Notes under the pieces: generated by a model
Seen by the model: only the letters and a program-made list of their open reading frames with translations
What the model was told of the DNA's origin: nothing
Databases searched by the model: none
Made by a program: the position numbers and the translations under genes
Shown: piece by piece, positions 1 through 47,231 of the stretch
Numbering within the stretch: the first letter of the stretch is position 1
How the letters are laid out: every line of letters starts with the position of its first letter
From: Penicillus capitatus
Taxonomy: Eukaryota; Plantae; Chlorophyta
DNA: 64,000 nt
Assembly (NCBI GenBank): GCA_965649825.1
Contig: OZ287694.1
Coordinates: 1,115,197 to 1,179,196, forward strand
Direction: 5' to 3'

Positions 1-293
1 GCGAGCACGCAAGGGGGATGGGACCCATCCGTCAGTTGATGCAAGAGATCCGGGAAGACATGAACCGATATGATCGCCGCAGAGAAGAATGGATCCGACA
101 GGGCTTGATAGAGGGCCCTTCTAAAAGGTCTCGGCAGGACCCCGAAGGGAGTTCTTCTAAAAGGCCCCGGCGGGACTCGGAAGGGGGCCCTTCTAAAAGG
201 TCTCGGCAGGACTCCGAAGGGAGTTCTTCTAAAAGGTCGCGACGGGACTCGGAAGGGGGATCTTCTAAAAGATCCCGTCGTCGACTGAACTGA
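1..293 (+). CDS. 3' part of the cassette orphan ORF (identical to the C-terminus of 45921-47096)
   Basis: Open frame from position 3 (EHARGMGPIRQ...) to TGA at 291-293; same translation as copy 2. Confidence 0.75.
   Translation, partial: EHARGMGPIRQLMQEIREDMNRYDRRREEWIRQGLIEGPSKRSRQDPEGSSSKRPRRDSEGGPSKRSRQDSEGSSSKRSRRDSEGGSSKRSRRRLN
117..293 (+). repeat. 36-bp coding tandem repeat, ~4.9 units, (P/S)SKRxRxDxEG(S/G)
   Basis: Units start at 117, 153, 189, 225 and 261, in an A-B-A-B' pattern. Confidence 0.95.
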
Positions 294-794
294 CTCGCCC
301 CGCCTGTTGCGGGTTAGGTTGAGAAAAGGTCAGGCCCAGGTTCGGCCGTCTGTTCGGACAGTCACGACTGCACGGTGGTTGCTGAGCGCGTTGTTGACTG
401 GTTCACCTCGCGCTTCTGCAAAAGGGCTAGTGGCGTCGTCGTGCTGGCGACGGGTTCCCAAGCACGCGGCGCCAATCCCGGTTTTGCCGTTCGTTAACCA
501 GTCGAAGGCGGGTCCTCGATTGGTGACGCCGTTCCTGGGCCTCCGCACGTTACACACGCGGAGTGATGATCTGACAATCACACTAGCATCCCGAAGCTTT
601 TTCGAGTTCACTTTCTACTGTTTCAGATTGCGCAAGAGCAGAATAATAGGCAAGGCTAGGGTTGGGAGCCTTTTGGCGAAAACGTCTCGGTGATGGATGT
701 GACTTGTCTCGGTGCTCGGCGACGGGTTCACCTTGCACCGATGGACGGACGTTCTGACGCTGCTGCCTCGGAGACTGGTTTCTCCTACGCGTGG

Positions 795-1056
795 TGTCAT
801 TGGCTGTATCCGTTCTAGCCACACTCGAAGGCGGGTCCTCGAGTGAACGGCACCCCTTCCCCGCGCCTCGGGTGTACATCTGGAATCTAGGTTCGCAAAA
901 GCATCAAGTTCTGAGTTAGAAGTGCATGGTTGTCATCGGCTGTGTTCGCTCTAGCCACACTCGAAGGCGGGTCCTCGAGTGAACGGCACCGCTTCGCTGC
1001 GCCTCGGGTGTACATCTGGTATCCAGGTTTGAAAATGCATCAAGTTCTGAGTTAGA
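795..1056 (+). repeat. 136-bp period tandem duplication, each unit carrying a CACTCGA-N10-TCGAGTG hairpin
   Basis: TGTCAT...TTCTGAGTTAGA at 795-920 and 931-1056; hairpins at 822-845 and 958-981. Confidence 0.9.
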
Positions 1057-1185
1057 CTGTTAACGCAGATATCAATCAATCATATGAATCGAGACTCGTT
1101 TTTCCTGTCTGACTGCAATACTTACTCCTTTGTCTGTTGCGTTACCGTTTCCGTAGGGGAACGCAATGTCAATTACGGTTCTCCT

Positions 1186-1190
1186 TGTAA
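1186..1190 (+). promoter_or_regulatory. Candidate TGTAA polyadenylation signal of the cassette transcript
   Basis: First TGTAA seen downstream of the ORF stop; retained in copy 2 (45024-45028, minus). UGUAA is the known chlorophyte signal. Confidence 0.4.
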
Positions 1191-1427
1191 CGCCTGTTCC
1201 AGTCTCCATTGTTTGTATATAGCGTCGCATGTCGAAAGCCCGAATCCGTTCCCGACTTGTTAGAAATACGAACCACGGTCCGAAATCCTCGGACTCGAGC
1301 GCCGCACGTAACCAACAACTACCACGGACAAGAATCAACTTTTACGTTTGCGCGAAACCTTAGCAGCTTCTGTATTTCCGTCACTTTATCGACGTGATGC
1401 TGAATCTTATCCTTTGAGTTTTCACAT

Positions 1428-1524
1428 ATCGCCTCCGATACGGTCGATTGCGTTCGATCGCCTCCGATACGGTCGATTGCGTTCGATCGCCTCCGATACG
1501 GTCGATTGCGTTCGATCGCCTCCG
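1428..1524. repeat. 29-bp tandem repeat ATCGCCTCCGATACGGTCGATTGCGTTCG x3.3
   Basis: Perfect units at 1428, 1457 and 1486 plus a partial unit; copy 2 has only 1.3 units. Confidence 0.95.
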
Positions 1525-1899
1525 CTTACATGCTTGGCGTGGGAGAAGTCGTCTTGAGGCTGTTCTTCTTTTCCATACCACGAATTTGGACTTCCTTCGA
1601 GAATTTCTTGCAGGTTAGCCATTTTACTTGTCACAGCGAATGTCTCCGTGTTTGCCATTTTTTCGTGGCGAGAACTGAAGCTGGTGAGAACTAACTGCTC
1701 ATATCGATCAGAACTGAATCGATAGTTCGAATTTTTTTGAGAAAAAAGCAACGTTGCCCATTAAGAAGACACTCCGACACGTGCCTTCCACGAGAGCCCT
1801 TAGTACGTATGCACAGAACCAGACAATGTTTTCTGCGGAGGCGGGTTCCCTTTAAATGCGTCGTCAAAATGTCGTCGTCGATGAGAAAGGGACAGTGCA

Positions 1900-3106
1900 A
1901 TGCATGCGTTTACTATTCCAATTTGTAGAATCACGCGACTTCACGTCGTCCAAAGACGTAGATCGAAGGCAATGGCCCGAGAAATTGACGCTGAGATTCG
2001 CGATTACTTACAGCGAACGTCGGAGGTCAATGCGCCGCCGTCAGACTTGAAAGCGCTACACCGTCTACGTTGCAATAATAAAATTGTCGGACTTTTGACA
2101 GACAAGTGCGTTTCTCACTCTTCTTTATTCTCTCACTCTATTTTAAATCAGTATCGTCACCCAGCTCGTGAAGTTCTCAGATGTTTTTGTGGCACATACT
2201 ACTGATCGCGTCATCGATGTTGCGCCGCATCTGTCTACATGTGAGCAGCGCACTGATGCCATCGCCAGTATCCCACTCTATCATACGACCTGAAGAGCAT
2301 TCCGACCGATATAGGTGTGATGGAGTCGTTGCGTGAGGCCAAGGTGATCCGCGGTTGGCGCAACGAGCTGTATCCCGTCGTCGCTGAGTTCCACGATGCT
2401 CCCTTCTTCCTCGTCAGCAATGACACATCGTCGTTCCGGTCTCTTAATCGCTAACTTTTAGATCGAACGCGCCGCTGCAGTGACGCTGGGGATCAGAGCA
2501 TACGGTGTGCACATCAATGGGTACGTCAGAAAAGACGACGGTCTGTATATGTGGGTCGCCAAGAGATCTCCGACAAAACCTACATGGCCATCCAAACTCG
2601 ATCATATCGCAGCGGGCGGCCAAGTGTGACATCTCTCGCTCAGTTTTAAGTTGACATGACTGGAAAAGTGAATAGCCTTTCGGTGTGGGTTTGATGGAGA
2701 ATGTGATCAAGGAATGCGAAGAAGAAGCTGGTATTCCGCCGTCGCTTGCCGAAAAGACAATCGCAACCGGTGCTGTGAGTTACATGGCTCTACCAGGAGA
2801 AGGCGTCAAGCAAGATGTCCTCTTCACTTTCGATTTGCCACTTCCCCAGGACTTCATCCCACAACCCGTCGACGGAGAGGTACCATTGTCGCTACTATTG
2901 CAATTTTCTAATCGGATCCACAGGTGGAGTCCTTTTCGCTGCTGCCGATTTCGGAAGTGCAACATCTCGTACGCCGGACAAGGGATTACAAGCCGAACTG
3001 CGCCGTCGTGATTATCGATTTCTTCCTGCGCCACGGTCTTGTCTCTCCCGATCAGAAAGGATATCTAGCTTTGCTCGATTCTCTTCGACGTGGTCCGTTA
3101 TCGTAA
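1900..3106 (+). CDS. Nudix hydrolase 20/24-like (DUF4743 + Nudix), multi-exon
   Basis: Spliced motifs GWRNELYPV, YGVHINGYV, ENVIKECEEEAGIP (Nudix box), DVLFTFDL, YKPNCAVVIIDFFLRHG; stop TAA at 3104-3106. Start could be 1900 or 1972. Confidence 0.88.
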
Positions 3107-3133
3107 AAGTTTTCATCCACTTTGGCCGTTTCG

Positions 3134-5241
3134 ATGTCGACGATGACGCGACGCAGGAATCGTTCGAGCGACGATACGTCGTCAAAATCGACGCTATCGG
3201 GGGATCCATTTCGTCACCTCGACGACAAACTCGCCGGCGTTATCTTCGGCTGCACGGACGACACTTACGACGAATGCATAGAAGAAGGCGTTTTCGGTTT
3301 GCCCATGGGGCACATCTCTTACGTCCAAGGTATTAAACTGGGCACGCCGATCTTTCTCTTCAACTACAGTCGACGCGAATTGCATGGCGTCTTTGCTGCT
3401 GCATCGACAGGCCAGATAAATCTACGGCCACACGGCTGGACGAGCGGGACGACGGAGAAGACGAGCTTTCCGGCGCAGGTGCGCGTCCGACGACATAAAA
3501 AAGGAACACCATTGAAAGAGCACCAGTTTAAGAAGGCCATTCAGCAGAACTACGATTGCGACGGGCCGCTTTTTCAATTTGAATTGGATGAGGGGCAAGT
3601 CAAACTTCTCTGTCAATTATTTAAATCTACAGTTCCTCGAACTCAGAGGACAAAGCCAATCACACCGAAGCCGCCGCCAGTGATCCAATCACATGTAGCG
3701 CAGCGTTGTCACTCTGTCGATGACAATAAAGTGAATGTGGCAGCACAGAAGCCGTTATCTCAGAGTACATCTCGCCCAATGAGATTGTCCAGTAGAAGAT
3801 CTCGTCGTCCGCTCATTCCCAGCAGCTCGGGTACAGAGAAAAATGAAAGTTCAGTATTGCAGGGACCAAGTAAGTGTGATGGACCTTGGTTTGTCGAAGA
3901 TCATGGTTGTGTTGTCTATTGTAGACGATAAGAGAAGCAGCGGCCGAAGATCGCAGAAGAATCTGACAAACACTCGATCGTACAGATCTACCATTTCGCC
4001 AGCACAGGTAGCACCTCTGAGAGAGAAGAATGTATGTGCGAGTATTTTGACAGAGTGTGAAAGTGTCCCCTGGTCCGACGGGGTTGACACCACAAAATCC
4101 GGTTGGATTGCCGGTAAACTATACGCAACTTCGTCGTCCGCGGCGAACGTTGGGCGAAGCTAATGGTATCCTCAGTGAGGCAGCTGTGGAGCGCCTTGAT
4201 GGGAAGTATCGTACGAAGAAATCACTGTCCTTATCAGAACCTCCATCTCGACAGAGAAGAGAAGTCCTTCCCCCACAGGACGATCTTCTCACCCAGTTCC
4301 TTCAATCGACTCAGAAGGATGAAAGATTCTTTGCACACAAAACCGAAGATACATTGCTGCTCATCGGAGGCATTGATGAAGAAGACAGTTTTTCACGCAT
4401 CGAGGTCTTACAGGAAGATCGGCAGTCCTGGAAGGCATCACTCTTCATTCCGAACCTGCGTACCATTGGCAGTCGAGCCGTCAGCATTAACGATTGTATT
4501 ATTCTCCTCGGAGGTGAAGAGCAGGAGCATGAGTCGACATGTGCTGTCGAGATGCTAAAATCTGGATGGAAGAGATGGAAATCGATGCAGCCTATGCCAC
4601 ATGCTCGACAGCAATTTTCTGCGTGTCCCTTTGGAACATCGATCTTCACAGTGGGAGGTGGCAACGCCTTCCGTGAGATGGTTATTTGTGAGTATCTTGA
4701 TGACAATCGCAATTCGTGGATGCCTGCACCGTCACTCATCCAAGGGAGATATGGATGCGCCTCCTGTTCATCTGCCTCAGTTCTTTTCGCAGCTGGAGGT
4801 GGTCGTAGAAGCACTGTCCTGAGCACCGTCGAGATGCTGGATGACCGATGTCGCAAATGGCAAAAGATTCCTTCCATGAACGCAGCCAGAAAGCACCACG
4901 CAATGATCTCTTTTCAGGACAAGCTATGGGTGTTGGGTGGAGAAGACAGCGAGGGCGCCTATCTCTCCTCTGTCGAAGCTTACGATCTGCGGAATCAACA
5001 ATGGAAAGCTATGCCGTCTCTCATGAACCCCAGGGCTTACTTTACTGCTGAGGTGCTGGACAACACGCTCCATGTTCTGGGCGGTTCCTCAAGTGCCAAC
5101 GTCGCAGATTTCCGAATTCTGGCTGGAGAACAATACAGTTGCGGAGATGCGACATGGATCGAAGGCCTTTCTGTTGGGAGCACAGGAAAGAGAGGCCATC
5201 ACACCTCCTGTGTCATCCGCGCTAGTCATTCAATGAATTGA
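3134..5241 (+). CDS. DCD (development and cell death) domain plus kelch-repeat protein
   Basis: LAGVIFGCTDDTYDEC...FGLP...LFLFNY...LHGVF...FPAQV (DCD) followed by ~6 kelch repeats (GG doublets, W...M...R) in ORF 4057-5241. Confidence 0.88.
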
Positions 5242-5242
5242 C

Positions 5243-5247
5243 TGTAA
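5243..5247 (+). promoter_or_regulatory. TGTAA poly(A) signal after the DCD-kelch gene
   Basis: TGTAA one base after the TGA stop. Confidence 0.5.
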
Positions 5248-5422
5248 ACACGTTTGAATGACAAGACAGTTCTAAAGACATTCCGGAGAGTCATCACACT
5301 CACAGGCACCACAGATGGCTACGATCGACGTTTCGCATAAGAATAAATGATATATCTAGAAGCAGCAGAAGACAAAGAGACACACAAAGAATCTATGCTA
5401 CCCACAAAACAGCATTATCTGC

Positions 5423-8400
5423 TCAGTTCCGCTTTGATCCAGTCTTTTCCTGTCGGTCCGCGTTCGGCAATCTGACAGAGGGGCCTACTACAGGAGAGGG
5501 GTAGAGATGGCATAAGGACGCGATGTGATGTGACTTGCCTGTCCTGTCATTGGCTCTTTGCACAGTAGAGGGCCGTACGATTCCTTCGGACAAGAGCGAT
5601 TCGAGCTGAACACTGGATGGTGATTGAGAGAACTGCCCTCGAGAATCTAATGGTCCCAAGTGGTTTTGCGTTGCTTCTTCGTAAAGTCGATGAAATGCAT
5701 CATCATGCACGATTTCTTTAAGCAGTTCTGGTTGCATTTTAGTACTCAAGATTTGACGGAACCAATCCCTAGACACACATACCCAAGTTGTCTATTCAGT
5801 TATGTTCATCAGCACGGCACGTACGTGGCTTTCATGCCAGATCGAGTAGCAGTCGAGAGAGGAGTCACACTCTCAGGGGTTGTTTGTTCTGCACCATACC
5901 GCTGCAGTGCTCGCGGAGGCGTTAACAAATGAGAGAGCTCGTTTCTATCGGCGGCGGTTGGCGTTTTTAGAACAGGTTTAGCAGTACGAGAGTCCGAAGG
6001 GATAGCCTTGACGGGTGTTGGATCCTGTTGACTGAGCTCCTCCCCTTCGAGTTCCCTACACACACCATCCATCAGCAGATCAGAAAAGCGCATTTCGTCC
6101 TCGACCTCAAGTCGACCCATTCTGTCAGCTCAGTCGGTTTTCCTTTATCACACGTTAGACGATGCTCATTCGTTTGTCTATTGAAACCAGTCACTTCTGC
6201 CTTGCGCCACTCTGCGTGGTCAGGCCATCGACGCCAGATTTGACATCCAATCAGTGCCCATCCCAATCGATCCAATGCCATACCTACAAGCCATTTTGAG
6301 AAAGAGTGAGGGTGTGAGCGAGTCATGCGTGTTTTCCTACCAATACTCTCTCCAGGTTGAATCTCCACAGAGTCTTTCTGATCTATGGGCAGTTTCTTGG
6401 AATTCTCAAACTCACTGGCGCTTCCTTGCGTCACAGGGGGGACAACGAATGGCGTCTCTGCCGCCGTCGTCGCCACCGAATGGGTTTTCTTATATTCCGT
6501 TGGTGAAATCACTCTTTCAGATTCTGATCGTTTTTGTGCAGTCGAGAGACTCTTCTGCCTATTCCATTCTGTGGCAGATGTCTCTCCCATCAATAGCTGC
6601 GTCAAAGTGCCGTTACGATGTTGGCGACGCACACCTCTTGTCGTCATCTGATCTCCATCCCCAGTGGATGTCGACGTTCCTCTAGCCACAGGCGTCTCCA
6701 GGTCAATTCCTCTAAGTTTCTGAGGATAGGGCTCGTAGACAGAAGAGGACGGAGCAGTTCCATCTTTGAGCTCTTGACTGTACCGTCCTGATGAAAGATA
6801 ATGCTCAAAATCGAGAAGACACTTCTCATAGTTAAGGCGCATGTTGTACGAAGCAGAGGTTTGTCCTTTCAGATTGACATTCAGAGTGCGGCAGACATCT
6901 TTCCAGAGCTTCACACTGGTGACAACATCATAGCCTCCTCTCTGCTGAACCTCATGAAAAACCTGCATCATCCCTGTCCACATCCACTGCCCTCATCGAC
7001 GCGATCTGCTTACTTTGTAGAGATCCAGATCTTTGCCTGAAAAGACAGGGCATTTGAATTTCCCTTTCAGTCTCTGCATGAAGTTGTGGATGAGAATAGG
7101 AAATTCGTACGGACCGGGAAGCAAAGCCATCATCTCTGGTGGCACAGGACCGGACGGATTCTTTGGATCGTAGTATACAAGTTCCTGAAGCGCCGATCCG
7201 CGTCGTCGTGGTCGCCCTGACGGTTTACCTCCTTCAATATCTGCCAAGGGATCGTAATCTGGATCGCCGACAGACTGCACATCATCTGCATCCACCATGT
7301 CTGCCAGATATTCCGTTCGGTGTTGCTTGGCCAAGGCACGCGCCTGACGCGATCTGGATTCGATCTGCCGCATGCGCGTCTCTTCGAGCTTTTTCTGTTC
7401 TTCCGGGTCGACTTCGATCTCCCATGGCGACACTTTCATCGATGCTCCACTGTGGTCGTTGTCCCACTCGACGGTCAAGCTTTCCCACGGATCATATGCT
7501 TCGCCCTGGACGGACTGTTTGACGCTCGAAATGGTACCCTTGTAGTAAATGCCACTGGGTCCACGTGTCAAGCTCTTGCCTCCGAAGAACATTTTGAATC
7601 GATCTCCCGTTTTCCATTTCGTCTTGCGGCTCTGTTCGAAAGCCGAAATCTTCACAATGTAATCTGGTAAGGCATTGTCCACGTGGATGGGCAAAGCAAT
7701 CGTGTTTGAGGCATCTTGGAGGGATGCCATAAGAAGCCACATGCATGGCTGGACTGGCAGAGATGTGTCTTCTGCCAAAGCTGTTCCCTCCGGAGGGGCA
7801 TCTGGATAGGGACTGCGATAAGAGATGCAGCAAACACGGAAATACTCAACAGGCGAGAGCTGCTCGGCACGTCTCTGTGCAGCTGAAACGATTTTGGGAT
7901 GGGTGGACTGACGAAAGCAAGAAGCAGCGGTCGATGCTGCCAATGTCTGGTGGGAAACCTCGAGATAACGTTCTAGATGGGCCAGACAACCTGTTCTCAA
8001 GAAAACGACGTGTTCAGATGGCATCGGAAAATACAATGGACACCTAAGGCCAATCCTGCCACACAGTCTGAGCATCGAGAACCTCACTTGGCATCTTGAA
8101 CCATAATGTTAAAGGCTAATCGATGAACGGAATGGGCCGGAGAATGGACAAAACTCTGAAACAGTGTCAGATGTGCGATGATGCCGTGGAGCGAAGGACA
8201 GTCGAGTAAACTATCCTTCCACGCTTCCCTCAACGACTTCCACTCTTCGCGCACTGTCCCGTGATCGCAGACCACTTCCATCATCCGACACACCTCTTTG
8301 GATACAACCGTCGTCTCTTCTGCATTCTAAAGGGGTCCATGTCTCAAGCATCGACGGACGGGAACGATGGAACCAAACCGCGATTTTATCTAGCAATGAG

Positions 8401-11400
8401 CAGATGTCGATGTGGACGTATTTTTCCGTTTCCCACAAAGGAATGGTGGAGAGCAGTGCCCGAACGCAGGTCAAGACACGTGTGGCCGGATGGACATCTC
8501 CAGGCGGCTCCGCAATTTCGCCCTCGCCTCTTAGCAACGGAAACCGAACGTCAGAATACCCATCCATCCTGAAAGCTTCGAGCATGGCAGGTTCAAGTTT
8601 ATGGTATCCCAGGGAGATGATATTGAGTGTGGAACTGTCAGAGAGTGATCGATTTCTCTCCAGCTGGACTGGCTTCGGAATGTGATGCATCGCTTCTAAG
8701 AGTGATTTCTCGCATTCCAGTTCTCCTTTCTCCAGCCAATCGATGAACTGAGCGATGGATTCTCCTTCATACCATCCCCAGAAGATCCTCTCTGAACGGT
8801 TACGGTGACGGTAGCGTTGAGTGGTTGCAGATACAGACAGACTCTGCGCATAGGCCAGGCGGTTCTCTACGTAGATACGGAAACATCCAGAAACGTCACC
8901 CAGTACCCAGTAATGATTTCCTTTGAAATCCTGTCCTAGTGTGCTCAACACACCCAACCTGTAAACACACACAACTCAGGACAGGAGCATTGCGGATATC
9001 GCATCGTGTACTTGTGGGCTGAAAACCAGTGGCTCCACTTTTCGACACTCAAATTCGCTCCCTTTCTCTCAAAAGACAGACTCATGGATTCGAGCACAGC
9101 CACATTTAGAGGCTTCTCTTCGTAAGACTGAAGTTTTTGGACAGTAAGTTTGTCGACTAAACTATTCAGATGTTCACGGAATACGTCTGTGGACACGACC
9201 ATGTCGACCAGTGTGCACAGGATCTTCAGCTTTGCGTGAACTGTCAAGTCTAGATACTCATGTCCGTGTAGAAATGCCGCAGCGCTGCGTGTGTGCTCAT
9301 CCACGTATTCCGCTTGCGATTTCAGCAACAATAGACTTGTGGACTGTGTCCAGTGTGGCGTTGAGGATGCCTTGACATCCATTGTGGCATGCGTCAATGT
9401 CTCTTTGCCAAATGATGCGCGTCCTTGGAGGACTCGACAGAGGGCCACGTGAATATCCTGCAGGAGCAGGGCAGAGGCTTTTCCCTGTGTATCTTGAACA
9501 GCATTCTTTGGATCTTTTGTCAGTTGCGTTTTGATGTCGCTGCGTTTGATGCTGCAGTACATTGGACACAAAGCAGCCTCGAATCTCCAAAAGGGAAAAG
9601 GTGGCAACTCCAGGCGCACATGAAATGTCATCAGAAAATTCCAGCAACTCAATGCCATGCCTATCAACTCCTGAGGGATTCTGAATGTTGAGACGACTGG
9701 AGGTGGAGAACCGCGTCGTCGATCCGCTTCTTGCTCTTTTCTAAGCTGTTCCTGTGCTTTTCTCTCTCGGCGTGTTTTTTGGGCCTCACTCTCACCAGCT
9801 TTCTTAGAACGGTGCCGCTTGCCGCTTTCATGAATATAATCTTCGTCTTCGTCTTCCTAGAAACAGTGCACCGTAGCACATCTTTATCTAAGGAGATGCC
9901 GTTCTCCTCTCTCTACTTTCATGTTTGTATCCATATCACAGTTGGGATCGAAAAGGGGGTCATCTTCATCCATTTCGGACAGAGAAGCTGAAATCTCATT
10001 AGCAGGAGAAGGAGATTGAATGCGCTGTTTCTTTCGGCTCACGCTTTTCTCTCGGTTTCCAATCTTCGCCATAACATTTTTCTCGCCGGTTTTGCTTGAC
10101 GGCACTGCAGATTTGTGACTCCTCAGTGACCGTTGCGGTGTCTGCGCCTTGATCGTCACTTCCTCCGATTCTAATCACACACAACGTCGATCCATATATA
10201 ATTTCACACTGCTCGCGCACGTGGACTTTCGTTGGTTTCTTGACTGAAAGTGGAGGCACCAGAATCGGCAACAACAGACACGCCGTTCTCTTCTTTTGTC
10301 GTCTTGGAGCAAGACAATGAATGTTTTGGCATAGATCGAAGTGTCTCTTCTTTCAAGGGTTCACTCTCCATGATAATTTCCACGACTTCATCAGGAATTG
10401 AAGGCGATGTGCCTCCTATGCAATCAGAGAGCGATGACTCAGCACAAAACAATGAGCCTGTTTCTGGTCGATTGATAGCAGATAGGGACATCATGAACTT
10501 ATGAAACGTCCCAGAAACAAATCGTACGTAATAGTCAGCCGGATTCAACAACTTATACCTGAACCACACACCACGGGTCAGAAACGCCATTTTAGAATGT
10601 CAGATCACCAAGCATGACGTGTAATTAACCAAATACCGGGAAGAGGACCATACTGAAAACACCAGTCCACCAGGACATCCAGACACAAAGGATACGGCTC
10701 GTCATCTGCATACCAAACACAGCACTGTTGACAAAGACGTCTGGTATGGGACAGTTTTCACCCTGCGTTTCATCAGGGACGATCAACTGACCCAAAGCCT
10801 GTATCTCTGTCATATTATCTGATGTGACATCCTCTAGAGCAACGTATTTTGTCGGTTCTTTCCTGAATCGAATGCAGAAATGATTCAAAAACCTCACTGG
10901 GAGCTCCGCAGATTCTGCCCAGACAGCAACTCTTCCTTAATAGATACAGAGACGAGGTGTACAGGTCACCTTTTCTCAGAGAGAAATGCTCGGGTACGTG
11001 TGCTTCGTCAGAGAGCTGCCTTTCCGCTGCCTCGTCTCTGGGCAATCCCGCCTCGTCCCACTTGGCTTCGAAATGCAGCTCCGTCTTGCGGCAGACCTCT
11101 CGGACAGGGGCATCGTTGGGACCGTTGTTATACGTGTAACAATTTTTCCAGACGCGCGAGACCTCCTTGAACACGTCTTCCGCCTTTCTGTAGTAACTGC
11201 GGAGGTCCCAGTTATTTTTCTGCCCGGTCTCGAGTCGTTTATATATGGTGCCGAGATCGATAGGACAGGAAATGACGGCGGGGTAGTCTGGTACGTTATC
11301 GGCTACGGGATCGACGGGTTTGTTAAAGAGCAGCTTTGCGCCTTTCGTCTTCATAACCCTCTGAACAATGGACTTGGCACTGTCGAGCTGGGGTCCATGA

Positions 11401-11411
11401 GAATGGGGCAT
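5423..11411 (-). CDS. Multi-domain chromatin protein: bromodomain, RFTS-like, DDT, WHIM1/WSD, BRWD/ARF-type Tudor-like, ARID, Tudor/Agenet
   Basis: Bromo: FNKPVDP...PDY...PIDLGTI...VWKNCYTYN. RFTS-like: DWCFQYG.PGIWLIT.HAW|YKLLNPADYY. DDT: WNFLMTF..RLEL.PF. WHIM1: YLDLTVHAKLKILCTL. WSD: LGQDFKGNHYW. Tudor-like: WKTGDRFKMFF...DPWESLTVEWD...VSPWEIE. ARID: DLDLYK...GGYDVV...WKDVC. Single-gene status and ends are inferred. Confidence 0.8.
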
Positions 11412-11963
11412 GGCCACAGCGGCGACGCCGTGTTCAAGAAAAATGAGCGATTAGACGCGGAATCGTAGTCGGCTCGAACGACGAAGCAGCAGAAACGACC
11501 CGAACGGACCAACACGTGAAGATGCGACACCGCTGATGTCACATCACGCACGCCAACGGCTGAACGTGACGTGCATCGACGGAAGAGCGAGCGCCGCCGC
11601 TCAGTCAACCGAGGCCCCGTACGAGACAGAGACATCCGACCAATGGCATCCACAAAAACAACTCCAGACAAGCAGCCGCGAACCTGAGAGAAATCCGTCG
11701 CCTCGAACAATGGGAAAAGACTCTGAATCGAATGCATCGTCGACATTGACGAAGCGCAAAGGGTGCCTGCTGCAGCAGGATGATTGAGTGTCTCTTAAAG
11801 TGTGAGAGACGTTGCTAGTAGTCAGTCTCTCACTCTTTTGTACATACACATAAACCGAGACGTCTCTTCAATAGCTTTCATCTGTGTCTACGATGTCTGT
11901 GGTCGAAGCGGTTTTCATTCCATAACATCGTCCGTTGTCGTACACCATTCTATTTCCGAGGCG

Positions 11964-14171
11964 ATGCTCGAGTTTGCCGTTTTGATTTCCGTTCTCGTTT
12001 TGGCAGGCGTTGAACTGCGTCGGCGCTCGAGTCACAAATCGCATGACGATCCGGACAAGAAGAGCGATGCCTCGGAGAAGGAATCACCGGAGAAGCCATC
12101 GGCGGCGACGACGACGACCAAAGACTACTGCGTTTCGCTCCTGATACCTTGCATCGTTGGCCTGCTGCTGCTCCTTGCCTATTACGCGATTCCGCCTACC
12201 CAAATCCGCTCGTTGCTGAAGATCCAGGGTTGTATCCCTCCCTCACCCGACACCCGAGCAACGGATTGGGATTACCGTCACAATACGGCAGAGTTACACA
12301 ATGTGAGTGGGAGTCCTGTAGCCCAAGTGCTGTTCAATCAAGGAGTGCTGCTGAGATGGGGTTACACCTTAGAAGGCTCCCATCAAGCCTTTGAGACGGC
12401 TATCTCTGTCGACGCCTCGTGTGCCATGTGTCACTGGGGAATAGCTTACGCTGCATCTCCCTTTGCCAATATTGTGGCATTGCCAGACAGCATTCGTTAT
12501 CCACATTTCTCAACGGACATGAACCGTGAGGCACGGCGGTTCCTCCAGAAGGCTGAAGAACTGCCTAAGCGATCGCTGAAAGAGGCAAAGTATATCGATG
12601 CCATGTGGATACGCTTTCCCGAAGTGCAAGAGGTGGAGAGAAAGCACCAGGAGTGGCTGGAATTTATGCATGGTGCTCGCATGCTCGACATCTGGAAGGA
12701 AGATCCCGCCGATCTCATTGCAGGCGCATTGGCTATAGAGGCATTTGTGAACTGCATGCCATGGGACTACTATATCCCACATTTGGAAAATCGTCCATCT
12801 TTGGAAGACATCTCGTGGTCGGATCTTATCGATCAGACCTTCCCAGATCAACAGAACGGCAAAGCTCAGTTCACTGCGATCACAAAGATCTCGTTCGACA
12901 ATCGAGTGTTCCAAGGATTACCTCTAGATCCTGCACACGAAGCAAAGAAAGTGCAGAATCAAGCAATGCGTCCTCTGGCAAGAGTGGTCGAGCAATTGGT
13001 GTTGAGAGCGTTAGAAATGGAAGAGGCACATCCGATGGTGACACATCTCCACATTCATCTCACTGAAGCGTCGATGGCTGATGAACCTGGCAAGGCATTT
13101 CTTTCTGCTTCGAAGCTCGATGCTGTGAGCCATCAATGGAAGTCAGCCCATCTCGTCCATATGCCAAGTCACACCTTCTATCGGGTAGGGGAGTATGCGA
13201 AAGCTGTGAAATCTAACGAGCTTGCGTACCTCGTCGATATCGAAACTTCCCAAAAGTACTGTGCACATACCTATGTGCCCGAGCACAATGTCAAAGTCCT
13301 CGTTGCTGCGGCCTCGATGGGCGGACTTCTGCAGAAGGCAGAGGAGTATGCACACGTTCTGAGAGGCATAGGCAAAAAGATAACACTTCGCAAGTACTTA
13401 CCAGATGGCTGGGACTATGTTTCATTGGTCGACATCTGGGGTCAGTTCGGTCAGTGGGACAAGATCCTCCAGATGGATATGCCTTCCGATGGAGCCAGAG
13501 GTGGCACTCCGTCAGAGGGCCTCATTTACAGCACAGCCATTTATCACTTCTCTCGCTACATGGCATTGACGCATCGTCCGATCCGTCGTGCACCTCGTGC
13601 ATTGCTGACAGATGCCGATGCCAACGTCGAACTAGCAGCATTCCAGGAAGCGGCAGCCAAGGTCTCCAAGAGACCCAACACAGTCCCTGGTGAAGGACTG
13701 GGTATCTACTCCGCTGCTTACTACGAAAGGATCCAAGTTGCATCGCACTACACCGAGATACGTGCCTCTCTGTTAAAGGGAAACACCGTATGTGATCCGC
13801 AAACATTACCTGAGTCGAGATGTGACGTGACGTGATTGTGTGTTCATTGTTAGACACAGGCAATCGTGCTCATGGAGGAGATCATCCGTCTGGCGAACGA
13901 GATGGGATATATGGAACCCCCGTGGACACAACAAGCGCCTCGGCAGTGCCTCGGGTACATCCTTCTGCATGATGGACAGTATGAAGCAGCCAAGAAAGTG
14001 TATCATCGGGATTTAGTCGAGAATCCGAGAAATCCGTGGTCGACACTCGGATTGGCTCAAGTCTACGAGGCCCTGCACCAGAAAGATGAACAGGAACAGA
14101 TGATGGTGAAGTATCAAAGCATGGATGCTGCAGATATCGGTTGCAGCTGTCCGATGCTGCGTATGGAGTGA
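11964..14171 (+). CDS. N-terminally membrane-anchored TPR-like protein of an uncharacterised family
   Basis: Two hydrophobic N-terminal segments, then QVLFNQG...WGY...CAMCHWGIAYA, HLHIHLTE, HLVHMPSHTFYRVGEY, and C-terminal NPRNPWSTLGL; one intron at ~13789-13859. Confidence 0.8.
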
Positions 14172-16164
14172 ATCTGACCATCTCTATACTCTCTCCTCCG
14201 CACGCATCACAAGATCCCATCGACGTTTCGTTCAAGAATCCGTCGATCGACCTTCGAAGTTTCCTCTTGTGTTTTGCAGTAGATCCAAGCACTCGACGCT
14301 CGGTTTGGGTTCTCTTTTTTGTCGGACTTAGCCGATGCTCTCTCTCGGTGCTAAACAAGCGTGTCTTTTTTTGAAGAATGGATGAGTGGTAATGTTTGTG
14401 TTGATGCATCGCGTGTCTTGCTGTAGAGACGAGACATTTTTGATCGGGTGCTCACAATGAACCGTTACGTTTGTTCGTTTAAGTGCATGCGTCGTCTTTG
14501 CAGTTAGGCCTGCACGCGCTAGAAGCGTTCGTGTCGAACATCCTGCCTAGTATCCCCTACCGAGATATCCTACGCCTTTCTCGTCGACATTCCTGATCCG
14601 TTGTAGCAAAATCCGCCTTCGCTGTCACAAGAGGGTAACCGTCAACTGGCACATATCGGAAGGAGAGCATCTTGCCTCTCAGTGCCTCGAAGACAGGAAA
14701 GCGGCTACACAGCCACACATTGCTCTGTCTATTGGTTTAGCAATCTGTTCACGTCTATCCAACCCACGCATGTTCAGAGAAGCCCGTTTTTTATTCCGCC
14801 TGTACTTATGTATGTACATCCATCATTCTCAAACAGTCACGGTGGATCTTCTATGACTTGATCATGCCGGCCTTCTCTGTGAAAGATATCTTCTTCGGTC
14901 GAAAGAAACAGATGTTTATTTCGAAGAAGGGGCGGTATGTTATGGACATCTATCTCCATTATTGATCGCCTGCCTTTGCTCTTCCGAAAAGGATGGGCGC
15001 AAATGCCTTTAGAGGGAATGCTGTCTCTTCGGCCTTTATCGTTTGCGACTCTTGTCGCGCTTTATTCGGCATCGCTTGAAGTTTTCTATAAAGCAGCCGC
15101 ATTTTTCTATATTAAATGATGGGTACGTTGCTTCAGTCTAGGTCTTTCCCCATTCCATGCAAAGAGAAAAGCATGTGTTCATTAACATCAGCGAGAACGC
15201 TCTCGTCATGCATGAGACTTCGAAAAAGCGTTTGTGAAAGAGAGGAATCACTACAGCGAGACGTAATAAGGTATTGCTGAATACTTTTGCACAAAATCCA
15301 GAACTAAAAACCAAAGCGAGTGGTGGACATGCCGAAAAGTCACCATAGGAAATCCTTTGCGAAATCACAAGCGTACAGCGCTGCTGCCATCGCAATCTTA
15401 TACACACCGTATGTTCTATTAGCACCTCTTGATAAACTTTGTCCAGACAATCCAGGATGGGAAAACAAGAATATATATGGTCTTGACACAGAAATCTAGC
15501 TAAGATATCTAATTTGTCAGCTCTTGTCTCTTCAACGGTCCAGAGCGAGACGATGAGATCTGAGCTGCATTCCTTGTTTCTAACGACTAATCGAACGAGA
15601 CAACCCTTGTAAGTGGGACTTGGACGCATAACTGCGCGCTAGTAACGTTGACCAGAATCAGAGGATGTGACGTTGTATATGCATAGCATCGATGTCTTTG
15701 CAAGAATAGTTATCCGTTTTCACAGGATGAGAAGTTCTGGTGTGTTTGACAATGAGAGCAAGCAAACAAGCAAGCAAATAATCCTAGTTTGGGTTCGTCG
15801 GAAAGACAACGGAGTACCATACATTGGGAGCATAGGACGACGACGACGGTAGTTATAAGAATAACGATAACCTGAAACGAATCCCAACACCAGATATCTC
15901 ATAGAGCTGCTTGAAGCTGTTATTCATATTAGAGCAGCAGCTGGTTGACCGACCGATCGACCGCTTGTTCATCCATCATCACCATCGACTGTCATCACTT
16001 TCAGAAAAAAAGTGATCGCCCAAAGCAAAAACCTCTGACCCATGCGATCATCAATTTTGAAAAACAACGAACTCAAAAGGTTCAACACCAAACAAAAGGG
16101 AAATCTTGGACCTTCTGCTACTACTCTTCTTGATGCTGTCAGTGTTTGCTGTCTGTCATATATA

Positions 16165-16169
16165 TTACA
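16165..16169 (-). promoter_or_regulatory. Candidate TGTAA poly(A) signal downstream of the kinase
   Basis: TTACA on the + strand, ~73 nt after the kinase stop. Confidence 0.4.
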
Positions 16170-16241
16170 CCCATCAATGCGATGATCCTGTGGCACCAAA
16201 TCTGCAGACAACACAGACGCAGGCTGTTAGATATCTGTGTA

Positions 16242-17465
16242 CTACTGCGTCCATGGACTGTACTTTATTTGATCTTCGATGTGGAGATTCCACAGTTCCA
16301 CATGTGGAAGCATGGCATTCAGACGTCGATGAATATCTTTAAAGTCTGGCCGCTTTCTCCAGTCTTGGTGCCAGCAATCCTGGATGAGTTCCGAGTATGG
16401 ACCCGGGACAAATCTCGGAATTTCGGGTCGGACGCCTTGAACAATGGCAACGAGAATGGCGGCTGATGTTTTGCGATGGAAAGGACGCCTGGCTGTGATA
16501 AACTCCAATAAAATCATACCGAAAGAAAACACATCTGCTGCACTGCGTAATTCGCCATCCCGCAGCACTTCCGGAGGCATATGATCTACTGTCCCCCACA
16601 GACCCGTTTGTAACATTTTGTTCTTCTTGAGTCTTCGACTGGCACCGAAATCGCCAATTTTGGCTACAAAACCATAAGGAGATGCTATATCAGTTTTGAG
16701 GAATACGTTCTGAGTTTTCAGGTCTCCGTGAACGACGCCATTGCGATGAAGACAGACCATAGCTTCTGAGATTTGGCTCGAAATGGCAAGAATCTTTTCC
16801 AAGTGCGGACGCATCAGGTCGCTATCTCGATGAAATCGCTTGTTGTGGATTCCGTCATAGAGCGATCCCACGTCACAGTATTCCATCATGATCCACGTCT
16901 CTTTTGTCGGATAGATATCACTACCCTCTTTCGACGGAATCCCTTTTGCGAGTTCCGAGAAGCTGCCAGACGAAACAGAGTCCCAACTCAGCGACAAGAA
17001 GGAGTTCTCTCGTCCAGACACATTGCTTGTATCGACATTTTCCCGCACAGCAATGATTTGGACGAGATTCGGGTGTGTGATGCCTGAGATAAATACTTCT
17101 GGAATCTCGGTCTCTCTATCTATGCAAGTGCTGACAATTTTGACGGCAACAGAATGTCCACTAAGGTCTGCGACATAGACGGTCCCGCTAGCACCGGATC
17201 CCAGTGCGCGTCCGAGAATAACGTTTGTAAACACCAGGTCTTCGTTCTTCAGCTTGCCGAATATATAGCGGCGGTTTGTGCTCCAACGTTTCTTATATTT
17301 CTTCAGAACATGCCTCCATTCTTCCGAACGCAACGACGTGGATGCCCAACTGTTGTTGCGACGAATGAGGCCGCAGGAAAAACGCTCAGCTCGAGAGGAT
17401 TTTAAGGAAGACGCATCGGCCTCGTCGAAGGAATGCTTCTTTTTCTTCGACAACCAGAACTTCAT
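16242..17465 (-). CDS. Intronless TKL/MAP3K-like protein kinase
   Basis: LGSGASGTVY, VAVK, HGDLKTQNVFL, KIGDFG, GTVDHMPPE, DVFSFG, CW...RP.F; first ATG at 17465. Confidence 0.92.
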   Translation of the reverse strand: MKFWLSKKKKHSFDEADASSLKSSRAERFSCGLIRRNNSWASTSLRSEEWRHVLKKYKKRWSTNRRYIFGKLKNEDLVFTNVILGRALGSGASGTVYVADLSGHSVAVKIVSTCIDRETEIPEVFISGITHPNLVQIIAVRENVDTSNVSGRENSFLSLSWDSVSSGSFSELAKGIPSKEGSDIYPTKETWIMMEYCDVGSLYDGIHNKRFHRDSDLMRPHLEKILAISSQISEAMVCLHRNGVVHGDLKTQNVFLKTDIASPYGFVAKIGDFGASRRLKKNKMLQTGLWGTVDHMPPEVLRDGELRSAADVFSFGMILLEFITARRPFHRKTSAAILVAIVQGVRPEIPRFVPGPYSELIQDCWHQDWRKRPDFKDIHRRLNAMLPHVELWNLHIEDQIKYSPWTQ

Positions 17466-17521
17466 ATCGCTATTAGAGCTAAAAGACTTGAAACGAAGTC
17501 CGTTTGAGGGGCGCCTCAAAT

Positions 17522-20500
17522 CTACAGTATCCTAACCGACGGCGGCACGGGCACCGTCGAGGGCTGACAACGGTCGCCAGTCGCTGACGAACACCCTTCG
17601 TCGTTGTAGAGAAGCTTAAAGAGCCCTGTGCCTGTCGGCATCGGAATTCCCATAATGATGGATTCGCTCACGCCCGTCACATTGTCGACGCGTCCGTGCA
17701 GCGCTGCATCGAACAAATGGTCTGCGGTTTTCTCGAACGATGCTGCATGCAGTACACTGTCTTTCATTCGACTGATACCCGTCCGAGTGATGCCGAGCAC
17801 CTCTCCCTGACCGTCACACAAATGGTGATCAAAATGCGCGAATCCGTGAACAGAGAACTGTGCCTTGTACGTCATACAGTCTGCCAGAAGCATGGTATGA
17901 CGGTGGTCGACAAACATTCCGAAGGCGACCATGGTTCCCTCAATCTCGGAGATGATCCTCGATCGAGCAGCTTCGATCCCAAGCACGCGCTCTGTCTCCA
18001 TAACGTGATTGGTGACTGTCTCACTCCCTGTGACGCCAGGAACGGACATGACCTCTGACAAATTTGTCCCTGAACATCCATCAGCGATGAAATGCGGCGT
18101 TGGTGCGACATTCACCTTCTGCTAAGATTCTGTAGGTCCCTTGTCCGGGGCAGTGCGGATCGGCGACTTCTTGAATCACGGCGCGTTCCACAGAGGACAA
18201 TCCCGCGACAATGACCTATCCACGCATACCCCTTGTATGTCGCCCTCCATGTGGCTTGTATGTTTGTGCGACCTCCGGTAGTGCTTGCTCGAGTCTGTGG
18301 ATTTCGAGGGGCAGATCGGCGGCTTTTCCTTTAAGGGCATCCTCCAAGGCATACACAATGAGATGCGTGGTCGATTCCACATGCACCGCCTCTGGTTTCA
18401 GCTTGAGCTTCGGCGCACTGAGAATGGCGTCTCGAATACTGTACGCATTGATCTCCAACTGCAGCTGGGCAATGATCTCCACGTCCAATGTCACACAAAT
18501 ACAGACATCATCTAGCATTACAACGGTCACATCGAGGGAACTCTCGCGAAGATACTCTTCGAACGTTGCGTCAGGGTCGTGACCATGGATTTCGATATCT
18601 GGCCAAGTTTCGTCGACTCCAATCGGCTCTTGATGATTCGAGCAAACACAGGATTGTCTTTGCATTCGAGTGTGACATGAATGATGGGCGTGCTGATATT
18701 CTTGGAGGCATTAATGATTTCTTTGATTCTGGGAACACCTTGAGTAATCTGCATACTTGCAACGCCGGCAAAATGAAAAGTCTTTAAGGTCATCTGCGTG
18801 CCTAACATCCCACAGACTCCATTGCCATCGTTACACAGCCCCTATCTTAAATGCCATGCCTGGCTCTCCGATGCTCTGTGCTGCGATGGCTCCGGCTGTC
18901 GTGCCCGGATGAATGAGCTTCGATCGGTATCCTCTCAGCAAACTCTGAACAAACCGATCAAATTCGACACGTGTGATGCCTTCTGAACAAGCCAGATACT
19001 CCAGGCGCTCCTCTCCACGTGTGTCATTGCTCAACTGGTAACGCTCTCTCCCCTAGAAGGCCATTCCGTCTTTGAACCCCCGTTGTTCATAATCGATGCA
19101 TCCGACAGCTTGGTAACGCTGAAGCTGTTTTTGAAGAAAATCATCGAGGCTGTGTCTAAAATGCTCGCTCAGGATGGACCCTGTTCCGCTTCCTGATGCC
19201 GACTCTGAGATGCTATGGACGTGCTCTATCATCCGTTTCATTTCATCGGGCAGCGGAACAGACCACTCTCTAGAAACTGGATCCCTTAAGTCGCCTCTTA
19301 AGCTCAGCGCCTTCACTCGACTCAACAAATGACTACCATAGGATTCACGATTCAGAAATTAAAGCTGTCGCATATCAAGCATGTACTCACTCGAAATTGA
19401 TAGGCGCTCCATCTTTGCACTCCATCAGTGGAGGATCGAGAGCGTCATCACCATACTTTAACTGTACAATGGAGGACGAGGCGTCTCGAACGGTTAGATC
19501 GTAGTGGACATAGAGATCTTCCAGTGCTTTGATCAATCGACGGGACATGTATCCCGTTTCCGCTGTTTTGACAGCAGTATCCACCAATCCCTCTCGCCCA
19601 GCCATGGTATGAAAGAAGAACTCTGTCGGCGTCAAACCCGAATAGAAAGAATTGGCCACAAATCCTTTGGCCTGAGGTGCCTTGTCGCCCTTGGGAAAAT
19701 GCGGCAGCGAACGTCGGGTGAAGCCATCTGGTGTCCTTGTGCCGCTCACTGTCTGCTGCCCCACACAGGCAATCATCTGAGCAATGTTAATGGGAGAGCC
19801 TTTAGATCCGCAGAGACTCATGATGAGACAGCTGTTGTGTTCGTTTAGAGACTGCATACAGAGTCTGCCTGCTTCCGAACGGATCTCGTTAAGCTCTGCC
19901 GTGATTTTGGCCTCCAGGGTCTCCTCTTCATTCATGCCAGGTTCAGGAATGAGACTGCCTTTCTTGTACTGTGAAATGAAGGTGTCACATCGATGGTAGC
20001 TCTGGTCCATTTTTCTGTTGTTCTCCTCTTGCAGCTGATGGGACGGCGTCACATCATCGATGCCAATAGAGAAACCGCGCTCCCCCATGAAACGTGCCGA
20101 GAGCTTCGAAAGGCGTTTCATGACTTCTGCAGCCACCCGTCCGCCGTAATCATTTTTGAGCACGCCAAAAAGGCCACCTGATACAAAGGGGACCACCATT
20201 AGGCCCGATTCTCGGACAGTGTCTATCTGTCTTCTCACCTTGATTGCCTCCCAATACCACTTTGCCCAGTCTGCCTGAGATATGTTCGCTGTTGATGAAG
20301 TGGACGTAGCCATCATTGGAGCACAGTTGTTCATCATGTCTGCTATAGAATTTCTCCTTGATCTCCACATTCACAAAGACTCTGCATGCTGCATTCGGCC
20401 GAACCAGGACACTGAAAAGTTGCTTTCCTGTCCATAGCTCAATGGGCTTGAGAATGGCCGGAGGTGGCATGTGGATTTCTTGCCGAGCATCCACCATGAA

Positions 20501-22558
20501 GCAGCAGTACATGGCAAACTGTGCTCGTGTCAGATAGACATCTTTGCTTGTGATGAGATAGGCACAGGTTAAGAAATCTTGTGTGGCACTGACAAGCAGT
20601 TCTCCATTCTTAGGAGCACTGAGATTGTGATCGGTGCCCATCAAGAGCAATGCCTCAGCTCTTGCTTCTTCTGTCTGGGGCAAGTGCAGATTCATCTCAT
20701 CTCCGTCAAAATCTGCATTATACTGCACAACAGGAATATGACAATCAGGCAGGCACAAGGGAGAATATGTTTACTGGATTGCATACGCATTCGTTGAAGC
20801 GAAGGGTTCTCCATGGACGCACCTTGACCTTGTGCGCCATCATGGACACACGGTGCAAAGAGGGCTGTCGATTGAACAGGACAATATCACCATCGTTCAG
20901 ATGACGCTCGACGACATCCCCTGGCTACACCCACACTTGAAAGAGAGAGATTCGTTTTCTCTGGCCAAACTTGCAGTTCTCGAGCAATCTTGCGGCGGTC
21001 GGCATACTTTAAGAAGAACTTGCTGCCGTCGAGTTTCTCTACGAGATTCGCTCCTGGATGCATAAACTGAGAGAAGAGTCAACTCAAGGGTCACGTGGGA
21101 TGACAGAAGACCTGTCCATTGAGGATGCATTGCTGGAGGTGGGGTATGTTATGCTGATTGACGCGCTCTGGATACGTCAGTGTTTTGGCGATGTATAGAG
21201 GAACTGCCAGTTCGTCGATACCGAGATTCGGATCTGGTGAAATGACCGTCCGTCCACTGAAATCCACTCTCTTTCCACTCAGATTCCCTCTGAATCGTCC
21301 CGATTTGCCTTTCAGCCGTTGAACATAGCCACTGACATCAACACCATCACCAAAGGGCTAAGATCGGCAGGAGAGCAGTACCGAACACGGCGTTGTGGTT
21401 GAAGAAGAGGCGACAGTCCAGGTAGATCGCTATTGAGTACGACGGCGAGTTCGATTTGCATAGCATCCCAGATCTCCACGACAGATGTAGCGGCAATGCC
21501 TTGTTCAAATCCTGCCCTGAGCCTCGTGTTGTAGTCCAGAATCTGAGAGTGCATGGAATTGCAGGATGGCAAGGAGAGTGTGCAGCAACTTGTGTGAGAC
21601 GCATGGAGATATCATCTTCGTTACTCCCGACGCCTTCCATCTCCACGGAGGGACGAATGCAGACCGGCGGGACAGGGATCCTTGTGACGATCAGGTTTTC
21701 GGGGCGGCCTCCCAGGCACAAGAACTCCACATCTTCATCAGGTATGCTCTGAAAGAGATGCAATACTCTCAGCGGATTCAGATCGTCCGTGACCTGCAGT
21801 AGGCAGACATCTTCTTAAGTGTGTCACCTCGGCTTAGGGGAGAGGCCTTGGAGAGGAGGCGCTCTATGGAGCTGTTGTATAGAATGGCTTGCTCAAATTC
21901 TGTTCTTTGCAGCTCGGACGTACGATACTTGTAGGCATCGTGCATGAGTTTGTAAACGCCGCCTGCTTTCTTGACGACTGCATTCTCTGCACCGCAATAG
22001 GGACACAGACGAATCTGATTCCCAACCGATTTGCATCTATGTCACTCTTTTGAGACAAACGCATTAGCAGGAGTAAAGATTTGTGAACTTGGCATTGATT
22101 TTCTTGAAGATGGCTTTTCGGCCCAGTGGCTCCAATCTCGGATTTCTCAATTTTCTGAGGAACTCCTGTTTGTCTGTCGGCACGAGGAGCACTCTGGCGC
22201 ACGTCTTGCAAATGACTTGGAGAATTTTGAGGGTGTAAGAGAGGTAGCCAATGTGAAAGAGTGGGAGGAGAAGTTGGATGTGACCAAAATGCCCAGTGCA
22301 TTCTGAGAGAGACTGGTGGCATGTGGCACAGAGTGCTGTCTTGCTGCTGACGCCGAGTCTGGCATCCAAGACACTGCCAATGTGTGGTGTCCTCTCTGGC
22401 ATCTTGTAGAGTTTTGACTCATACACCAGCATCTCACTTCCCTTCTCGATCTCGACGGCGCCGTGCAACGCGAATTCGATCTTGGCGATCTTCTGCGGCG
22501 CAGGACGCGGCAGATAGGGCTCCTTTGAATAGACAACGCGAAAAGCATGCTCCGACAT
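17522..22558 (-). CDS. RPC1: RNA polymerase III largest subunit, multi-exon
   Basis: N-terminal KEPY...KIAKIEF and C..C...C.GHFG; [13 protein letters not shown]; [17 protein letters not shown]; TLKTFHFAG; C-terminal LGIEAAR...ASFEKT.DHLFDAA...IIMG.PMP.GTG and no CTD heptads. Confidence 0.95.
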
Positions 22559-33402: not shown

Positions 33403-33474
33403 GGCAAGCGAACGAACAAACAACGAGGCGACGCGACACTCAATGATGATTAACCAGACGACATTACCAAAACA

Positions 33475-38628: not shown

Positions 38629-38763
38629 GGAATTCGCATGAAGCGACAACCACGTGTTTGTTTAAGGGAACGAATTCGATTGATCATAAGCGTCATTGCG
38701 TTTACAAAAAAATCAAAAGAGAATGAAATGCGTGTTTTTGCCCAAGCGTTTCATTCTTGCACT

Positions 38764-47096: not shown

Positions 47097-47214
47097 TCTT
47101 GGTTTTTTGCTTCTATTCTAGTTTTTGCAGAAGGCAGAGAGAAAACCGAGAGAAAGAGCACAGAGAACACAACAGCGCGAAAGACAATAAGTCGAAAAAC
47201 TGATCTGCGTGCGG

Positions 47215-47222: not shown

Positions 47223-47231
47223 CCCGCGCAA

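Follow-up and report, generated by a model that had tools for sequence, protein, structure and literature searches.

The 64,000-nt stretch of Penicillus capitatus DNA analysed here (contig OZ287694.1; hereafter the window) contains a 42,765-nt block of host genes bracketed by two inverted copies of a kilobase-scale unit. The block encodes a DCD-domain protein, a Kelch protein, an ARID/BRWD/DDT-WHIM chromatin protein, a protein kinase, RPC1, a Chlam_PMP-repeat protein and a PKD channel. Each copy of the unit, referred to below as an arm, combines the 3′ end of an NFS1/IscS-like cysteine desulfurase gene (NFS1) with an orphan gene that has hardly any known relatives. The initial annotation regarded the unit as a discrete element that had been mobilised recently, either non-autonomous or of a new type. 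The arms instead belong to a familiar class of structure, inverted segmental duplications associated with an inversion, and are not a new mobile element.

Exact-protein look-up places the window on a 1.84-Mb metagenome contig (ENA ERZ25074695:ctg340529_34x), in which the left flank is covered by two loci, L002 and L007; a window position equals the L002 position minus 7186. Within the window, a repeat search recovers two inverted pairs, 1-1466 with 44748-46213 (1466 nt, 99%) and 1486-1745 with 44527-44786 (260 nt, 93%), and the 58-nt gap between the pairs reflects a 29-nt tandem repeat whose number of copies differs between the arms. This inverted repeat is not a product of chance. Both arms stop at the same sharp inner end, ...AAAGCAACGT, at 1754 and 44520, and the flanks past it are unrelated, as had been noticed before. 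The near-identical inverted copies originally delimited as 1-1754 and 44520-46213 are therefore real as a repeat, but position 1 is the edge of the window and the identity between the copies is uneven (0-7.9% substitutions). Arm homology extends 2,453 nt further leftward (L002 4733-7186, which matches window 46214-48530 reversed). The full unit spans L002 4733-8940 in copy 1 (4,208 nt) and window 44520-48530 in copy 2 (4,011 nt), of which only the inner end was within view of the initial annotation. From the outer to the inner side it consists of the NFS1 3′ end, promoter-region repeats, a 391-codon orphan open reading frame (ORF) and a non-coding 3′ tail of 1.46 kb. Unique sequence flanks both arms on all four sides, and the 42,765 nt between them are likewise unique.

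On its outer side, the unit breaks off within the NFS1 coding sequence, near codon 320 of 453. An intact NFS1 gene (window 48132-49511, minus strand) adjoins arm 2 and matches Aminotran_5, the class-V aminotransferase/cysteine desulfurase family, with E=3e-90. The unit takes in the last 134 codons of this gene, its stop codon and its 3′ flank. In arm 1, the same 134 codons form a stranded 3′ fragment (L002 4733-5131) that abuts unrelated sequence. Because NFS1 is complete only beside arm 2, the outer side of arm 2 is parental and arm 1 is the derived copy. Homology continues to the left of the window into a host gene, an outcome that the initial annotation had itself linked to plain segmental duplication.

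The inner junctions can be polarised with a third copy, about 90% identical, that is found on another contig of the same sample (ERZ25074695, ctg340142_10x). This copy reads NFS1, orphan gene and tail, and continues across the equivalent of 1754/1755 into window 1755-1939. In a three-way alignment of 1755-1960, the flank of arm 1 alone agrees with the third copy at 90 sites and that of arm 2 alone at 2, so the inner junction of arm 1 is ancestral and that of arm 2 is new. The old junctions are the inner one of arm 1 and the outer one of arm 2, while the new ones are 44520/44519 and L002 4733/4732. Each arm combines an ancestral junction with a new one, as is characteristic of an inversion-breakpoint duplication. 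This polarity, together with the stranded NFS1 stump, identifies the arrangement in the window as derived.

The third copy is itself an insertion. Its region (L003 6857-17881; L011 15958-22965) sits between two sequences, P and Q, which adjoin each other at a paralogous site 27 kb distant, and its ends, at window-equivalents 50094 and 1939, fall exactly at the P/Q break. The P region (LRR_14 genes, >6 kb) is also duplicated, in direct orientation. NFS1 in the third copy is a pseudogene, as it carries an in-frame stop and its protein identity (89.7%) is no higher than its DNA identity (90.7%). The contig was considered as an orthologous sister locus and rejected in that role, the NFS1-orphan segment being an insertion between P and Q; it serves solely as a record of the source order. 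A young Ty3/gypsy-type long terminal repeat (LTR) retrotransposon (L003 12812-17731; gag-protease, RT-RNaseH and integrase) interrupts the third copy at window-equivalent 1802-1806, with 186-bp LTRs that are 100% identical and a 5-bp target-site duplication. A long interspersed nuclear element encoding Exo_endo_phos_2 and RVT_1 domains and a 421-aa ORF1 lies 8 kb past it.

The orientation of the block can be compared with that in a related genome (ERZ26696514:ctg303793, 1.18 Mb), which was found via a 365-aa relative of the orphan protein, is ~85% identical in flanking DNA and is represented by a second, near-identical contig (ctg303802). On a single contig, this relative carries NFS1, the block from its start to its end (1878 to 41169) and the Rgp1 flank, whereas the order in the window is NFS1, arm 2, block end to block start, arm 1 and Rgp1 flank. 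Followed along the relative, the Rgp1-side flank comes first and equals the left flank of the window reversed (L004 13211-21098, matching L002 4141 to ~10.98 kb left of the window). Next come the orphan gene and block sequence running from window 41169 back to 32876. After another 14 kb, a single 16.3-kb alignment covers window 18001 to 1878, and NFS1 (window-equivalent 48083-50116) follows 168 bp after window-equivalent 1878. The 42,765-nt block is inverted in the window with respect to the relative, between the same outer flanks, and the two inverted copies sit exactly at both ends of this one segment. Both features are those of an inversion-breakpoint duplication.

Overall, the arms differ by 44 substitutions and by minisatellite length changes, which corresponds to 98.9% identity at aligned positions. 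The substitutions are absent from the central 1,511 nt (L002 6658 to window 982), reach a density of 2.9% in 983-1427 and 7.9% in 1578-1754, and amount to ~1.6% in the outer 450 nt; identity at the inner edge of the arms is 92%. When the 44 substitutions were placed at random 200,000 times, a difference-free run of 1,511 nt was not obtained once (analytic P ~4e-8). In a three-way comparison, sites at which arm 1 equals arm 2 and the third copy differs predominate throughout the unit, and the 164 sites of the inner edge include 14 that are arm-specific and 17 that are shared by the arms. As the arms are mutually closest, and given these 14 and 17 sites, the duplication postdates the split from the third copy and yet is old, at roughly half the depth of that split. 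Nor do the inner edges, which differ by ~8%, fit a recent duplication. The arm interior has presumably been homogenised since the duplication, most simply by gene conversion between the arms.

These patterns point to an old duplication with gene conversion, contrary to the recent mobilisation of a discrete unit, which also fits poorly with an outer end in the NFS1 coding sequence and with ends that vary among the copies. At 4.0-4.2 kb, near-identical and with signs of exchange, the arms have the properties of recombination-competent inverted repeats. The earlier suggestion that they could flip the RPC1/PKD block is supported in substance by the inverted state of the block relative to the related genome and by the central identical tract, which shows exchange.

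The explanation to which we lean, with about even confidence, is that the arms were made at the breakpoints of a lineage-specific 42.8-kb inversion in one step, through a staggered break. The ancestral order would have been NFS1, orphan gene, tail, block (DCD ... RPC1 ... PKD) and Rgp1 side. One breakpoint would have been staggered, its two cuts lying 4.2 kb apart, in NFS1 near codon 320 and where the tail ends (1754/1755). The second breakpoint would have separated the block end (44519) from the Rgp1-side flank (L002 4732). Inversion of the block by fill-in and end joining would then have placed a copy of the stretch between the two offset cuts at each end of the block, in opposite orientation. 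In this scheme A-U-B-C becomes A-U-B(inverted)-U(inverted)-C, where U is the stretch between the two offset cuts of one breakpoint. NFS1 would have remained intact beside arm 2, with the 134-codon stump beside arm 1. Later gene conversion would keep the central 1.5 kb identical while the edges drift. The duplication may have spared the essential NFS1 gene from the cut that a plain inversion would have made at codon 320, possibly the reason why this form survived. In Drosophila, 17 of 29 inversions carry inverted duplications of breakpoint sequence, often at one breakpoint only, and staggered breaks have been proposed as their origin (Ranz et al., 2007, PLoS Biol 5:e152, PMC1885836).

With respect to the context before the inversion, the third copy keeps NFS1, orphan gene, tail and block start, and the relative has one orphan copy at another site; the exact arrangement before the inversion was recovered in none of the genomes examined. 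In the relative, the orphan cassette (L004 8707-13211) is located in the distal block, between window-equivalents 41169 and ~41302, and NFS1 abuts the block start with no orphan cassette between them (L009 16155-16323). The parts of the cassette are circularly permuted there: a 160-nt piece (L002 5351-5510) that is upstream of the promoter in the window is found downstream of the tail, and both junctions of the permuted cassette show a 7-nt AATCCGT/AATCAGT overlap. Since a minor contig from the relative's sample (L010) has a window-like order, the cassette arrangement of the relative is probably the derived one. The third-copy insertion and the permuted cassette indicate that the block ends and the cassette are hit repeatedly. 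CGATCG-rich minisatellites with units of 27, 29, 33, 39 and 68 nt surround the cassette and, speculatively, may be fragile or recombinogenic. It is improbable that the cassette, which is found at one end of the 40-kb block in the window and at the other in the relative and has a further copy at a third site, relocates as a unit via a circular DNA intermediate or by template switching at these minisatellites. If it did, it would be a ‘jumping gene’ that depends on host repair, not on an enzyme of its own, and that triggers rearrangements time and again. The permuted relocation offers a modest lead on transposase-free movement of gene-sized pieces.

A different succession of events would leave the same four junctions. 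The NFS1 3′ end, orphan gene and tail could first have been copied in inverted orientation into the site where the block end meets the Rgp1 flank, after which non-allelic homologous recombination (NAHR) flipped the block and perhaps still does so. This two-step route is a serious possibility, though one of less than even probability. The arms are sufficiently long and similar for it (4 kb, 98.9%, 1,511 nt identical), the identity gradient shows that they have exchanged sequence, and the third copy attests at least one further, independent copying of the region. In humans, inverted repeats are well known to mediate recurrent inversions (PMC3961182). However, the route invokes two events where one suffices, its first event has no independent evidence, and the intermediate, with two copies and an uninverted block, is not found in the genomes examined. 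Under either route, the arms would still be a substrate for more flips. Several points weigh against the staggered break. As duplication followed by recombination gives an identical final structure, the sequence alone cannot prove a one-step origin. The 4.2-kb duplication is also longer than any of the Drosophila yakuba set (<=1.9 kb; PMC1885836). The block orientation rests on one metagenome assembly, and the relative lacks window 41590-44519 and ~0.6 kb of the other flank, with the orphan cassette near that spot. The third copy is of uncertain genomic origin (10x coverage against 34x for the window contig) and is an insertion elsewhere. Finally, the ancestral junction of block end and Rgp1 flank is not intact in any genome examined; a protein search and cluster look-up aimed at it gave orthologues only in the more distant relative, and no ORF of more than 112 codons crosses the reconstructed junction.

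The cassette could also be a non-autonomous or new mobile element, moving for example via a circular DNA intermediate, in which case the arms would be two insertions. Consistent with such movement, its site differs between genomes (NFS1/block start in the window, distal block in the relative), it is circularly permuted with a 7-nt junction overlap in the relative, and the third copy was inserted between sequences that are contiguous at the paralogous empty site. Yet the ends never agree: they lie at L002 4733 and window 1754 in the arms, at the equivalents of 50094 and 1939 in the third copy, and roughly at L002 5351 and window 1273 in the relative, and two of the three copies include part or all of the neighbouring NFS1. 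No terminal inverted repeat is present: comparing the head of the unit with its tail in reverse gives a score of 10, and shuffles average 9.5 +/- 1.6. There is no target-site duplication either, the flanks ...GGGATAG and TGCCCAT... having nothing in common, in contrast to the clear 5-bp duplication at the LTR retrotransposon in the third copy. The unit encodes no transposase, reverse transcriptase, integrase or HUH domain. The initial annotation had already remarked on the lack of such enzymes and of terminal inverted repeats, and the domain search and head/tail comparison agree with it. Rfam and tRNA scans of the window returned nothing. Few copies were detected as well: tblastn with four orphan proteins detects two orphan copies on 79 kb of contig, in addition to the one on the 10x contig of the same sample, and only 4 related proteins occur among 5.8 billion. 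The termini, the missing target-site duplication and enzymes, the number of copies detected and the inconsistent ends lead to rejection of the mobile-element explanation as highly improbable, and with it of the earlier proposal of a non-autonomous or new element. Least probable of all is an assembly artefact, that is, a false inverted duplication or mis-join in a contig that comes from a single metagenome assembly. The arms carry 44 substitutions and two minisatellite length differences and have unique flanks on four sides, whereas a fold-back artefact would be a perfect palindrome located at the end of a contig and would not produce diverged copies separated by 43 kb. Arms of 4.2 kb are also short next to typical long reads.

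The two copies of the orphan gene are both intact and differ by 3 substitutions (Leu29Met, Arg37Gly and one that is synonymous). The 391-aa product has no Pfam domain. Its Ser-rich N-terminal half is repeat-variable. The protein also has 12-aa repeats of the SKRSRQDSEG type and a basic SKRSRRRL tail. A helix-like C-terminal segment is conserved, IRxLMQEIREDMNRYDRRREEW (IR..L.EIREDM.R..RR in the alignment of relatives). The 4 relatives all come from two ENA samples and all lack domains; they comprise its own paralogue, a 505-aa protein, the 365-aa protein (41% identical) and a 348-aa protein (37% identical). JGI metagenomes yielded no relatives in either of two scans, one for exact matches and one with back-translated sequence. 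The product is probably a fast-evolving nuclear protein. A 103-nt tandem repeat of ~3.8 copies (47230-47611; L002 5760-6160 in arm 1) immediately precedes a TATATAAG box and the ATG of the orphan gene. Most of its copies carry a CCAAT-containing motif (GACCAATCGGAGCGCGG) plus a GTGACACTTGCCC motif, and the array looks like a repeated enhancer/promoter module. A decayed third orphan copy in 41.2-44.5 kb, which could have accounted for the arrangement in the relative, was considered and rejected, because tblastn with the four orphan proteins (E<=1) matched the arms only; the ORFs in that interval appear unrelated.

A short ORF also begins near the inner end of each arm (1422-1751, minus strand; 44523-44790, plus strand), with products of the form MANTE.../MAKTE...MA[ND]LQEILEGSPNS.... 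Both run into GTAAGC, a candidate splice donor. As the differences between the copies are mostly non-synonymous, this ORF is probably not a conserved gene. The coordinates of these and other features of the locus are collected in Table 1.

Table 1. Features of the arms and the intervening block, in window coordinates.
Feature	Position	Strand	Remarks
Arm 1 (derived copy), inner 1,754 nt	1..1754	+	Remaining 2,453 nt left of the window
Orphan gene copy 1, 3′ end (97 codons + stop)	1..293	+	Whole ORF from L002 6305
Arm 1 non-coding 3′ tail	294..1754	+	Repeats inside; 1754/1755 is the ancestral junction of tail and block start
136-nt repeat in arm 1 tail	795-1056		2 copies
29-nt variable tandem repeat in arm 1 tail	1428-1524		3.3 copies; 1.3 in arm 2
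Block	1755..44519		42,765 nt, inverted relative to the related genome
RPC1	~17.5-24 kb	-
Chlam_PMP (polymorphic membrane protein) repeat gene	26702-32143	+	Large
PKD channel	33.5-35.8 kb
Arm 2, complete parental copy	44520..48530	-	4,011 nt; tail, orphan gene, promoter repeats, NFS1 3′ flank and 134 codons
Orphan gene copy 2	45921..47096	-	391 aa
Putative promoter	47215..47611	-	TATATAAG at 47215-47222 and 103-nt repeats; predicted function
27-nt CGATCG-rich minisatellite	47693..47745	-	2 copies in arm 2, 7 in arm 1; length difference 138 nt
Duplicated part of NFS1, codons 320-453	48132..48530	-	Within the intact gene at arm 2

Among the block genes, the Chlam_PMP-repeat gene has at least three paralogues (78%, 40% and 33% identity) on the same 1.84-Mb contig. 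The ORF at 26702-29473 was considered as RPC1 and rejected, since it belongs to this Chlam_PMP-repeat protein. Window 41590-44519 and L002 4141-4732, ~3.5 kb around the presumed ancestral junction, have no counterpart in the relative and contain lineage-specific ORFs only. One of these (42678-43196) encodes 172 aa rich in Ala, Ser and Val, and another (43978-44517) terminates 2 nt short of the arm. Beyond the parental arm, homology to the relative and to the third copy ends at nearly the same base (~50094-50116), shortly upstream of the NFS1 gene region with its 193-codon ORF (49508-50089). Past this point the window, the relative and the third copy all differ, and the relative carries a reverse-transcriptase ORF there. 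The position is another variable or breakpoint-prone spot.

With these results, a candidate for a new mobile element is replaced by a well-documented kind of event, and the locus provides a clean, base-resolved, non-animal example of an inversion with an inverted duplication at its breakpoint. In the staggered-break scenario, the duplication would have rescued an NFS1 gene otherwise cut by the break. The duplication also supplied a second copy of a fast-evolving orphan gene. Different assemblies of this organism may disagree on orientation at the arms, and heterozygotes would show suppressed recombination over the genes of the block, RPC1 and PKD included.

The locus shares some traits with several known systems. 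Like elements of the Pack-MULE or Helitron type, it features a kilobase-scale unit with host gene fragments, no enzyme of its own and more than one location. Unlike them, the unit lacks terminal inverted repeats, target-site duplications or TC...CTRR ends, its ends are not common to the copies, and only 2-3 copies were detected. Palindromes on sex chromosomes have arms that are homogenised by gene conversion. As in these palindromes, identity here peaks in the arm interior and drops toward the edge, but the spacer is a 43-kb stretch of essential single-copy genes and the arms measure just 4 kb. Inversions that arise by NAHR between inverted segmental duplications, such as polymorphic ones in humans (PMC3961182), offer a further parallel, as kilobase-scale, near-identical inverted repeats bracket the segment and the arms exchange sequence; in contrast, the repeats described here may be the product of the inversion rather than its cause.

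The closest resemblance is to the breakpoint duplications of Drosophila inversions (PMC1885836). Two differences stand out: the duplicated stretch is 4.2 kb here and at most 1.9 kb in D. yakuba, and many of the Drosophila copies have decayed (mean identity ~88%), whereas both orphan gene copies are intact here and partly identical, presumably by conversion. In both systems, non-repetitive sequence that here was presumably single-copy in the ancestor, with a gene and a gene fragment in it, is found inverted at both ends of the segment, and one copy retains the ancestral outer junction while the other retains the ancestral inner one. The duplication affects a single breakpoint here, as it does in 12 of the Drosophila inversions (PMC1885836).

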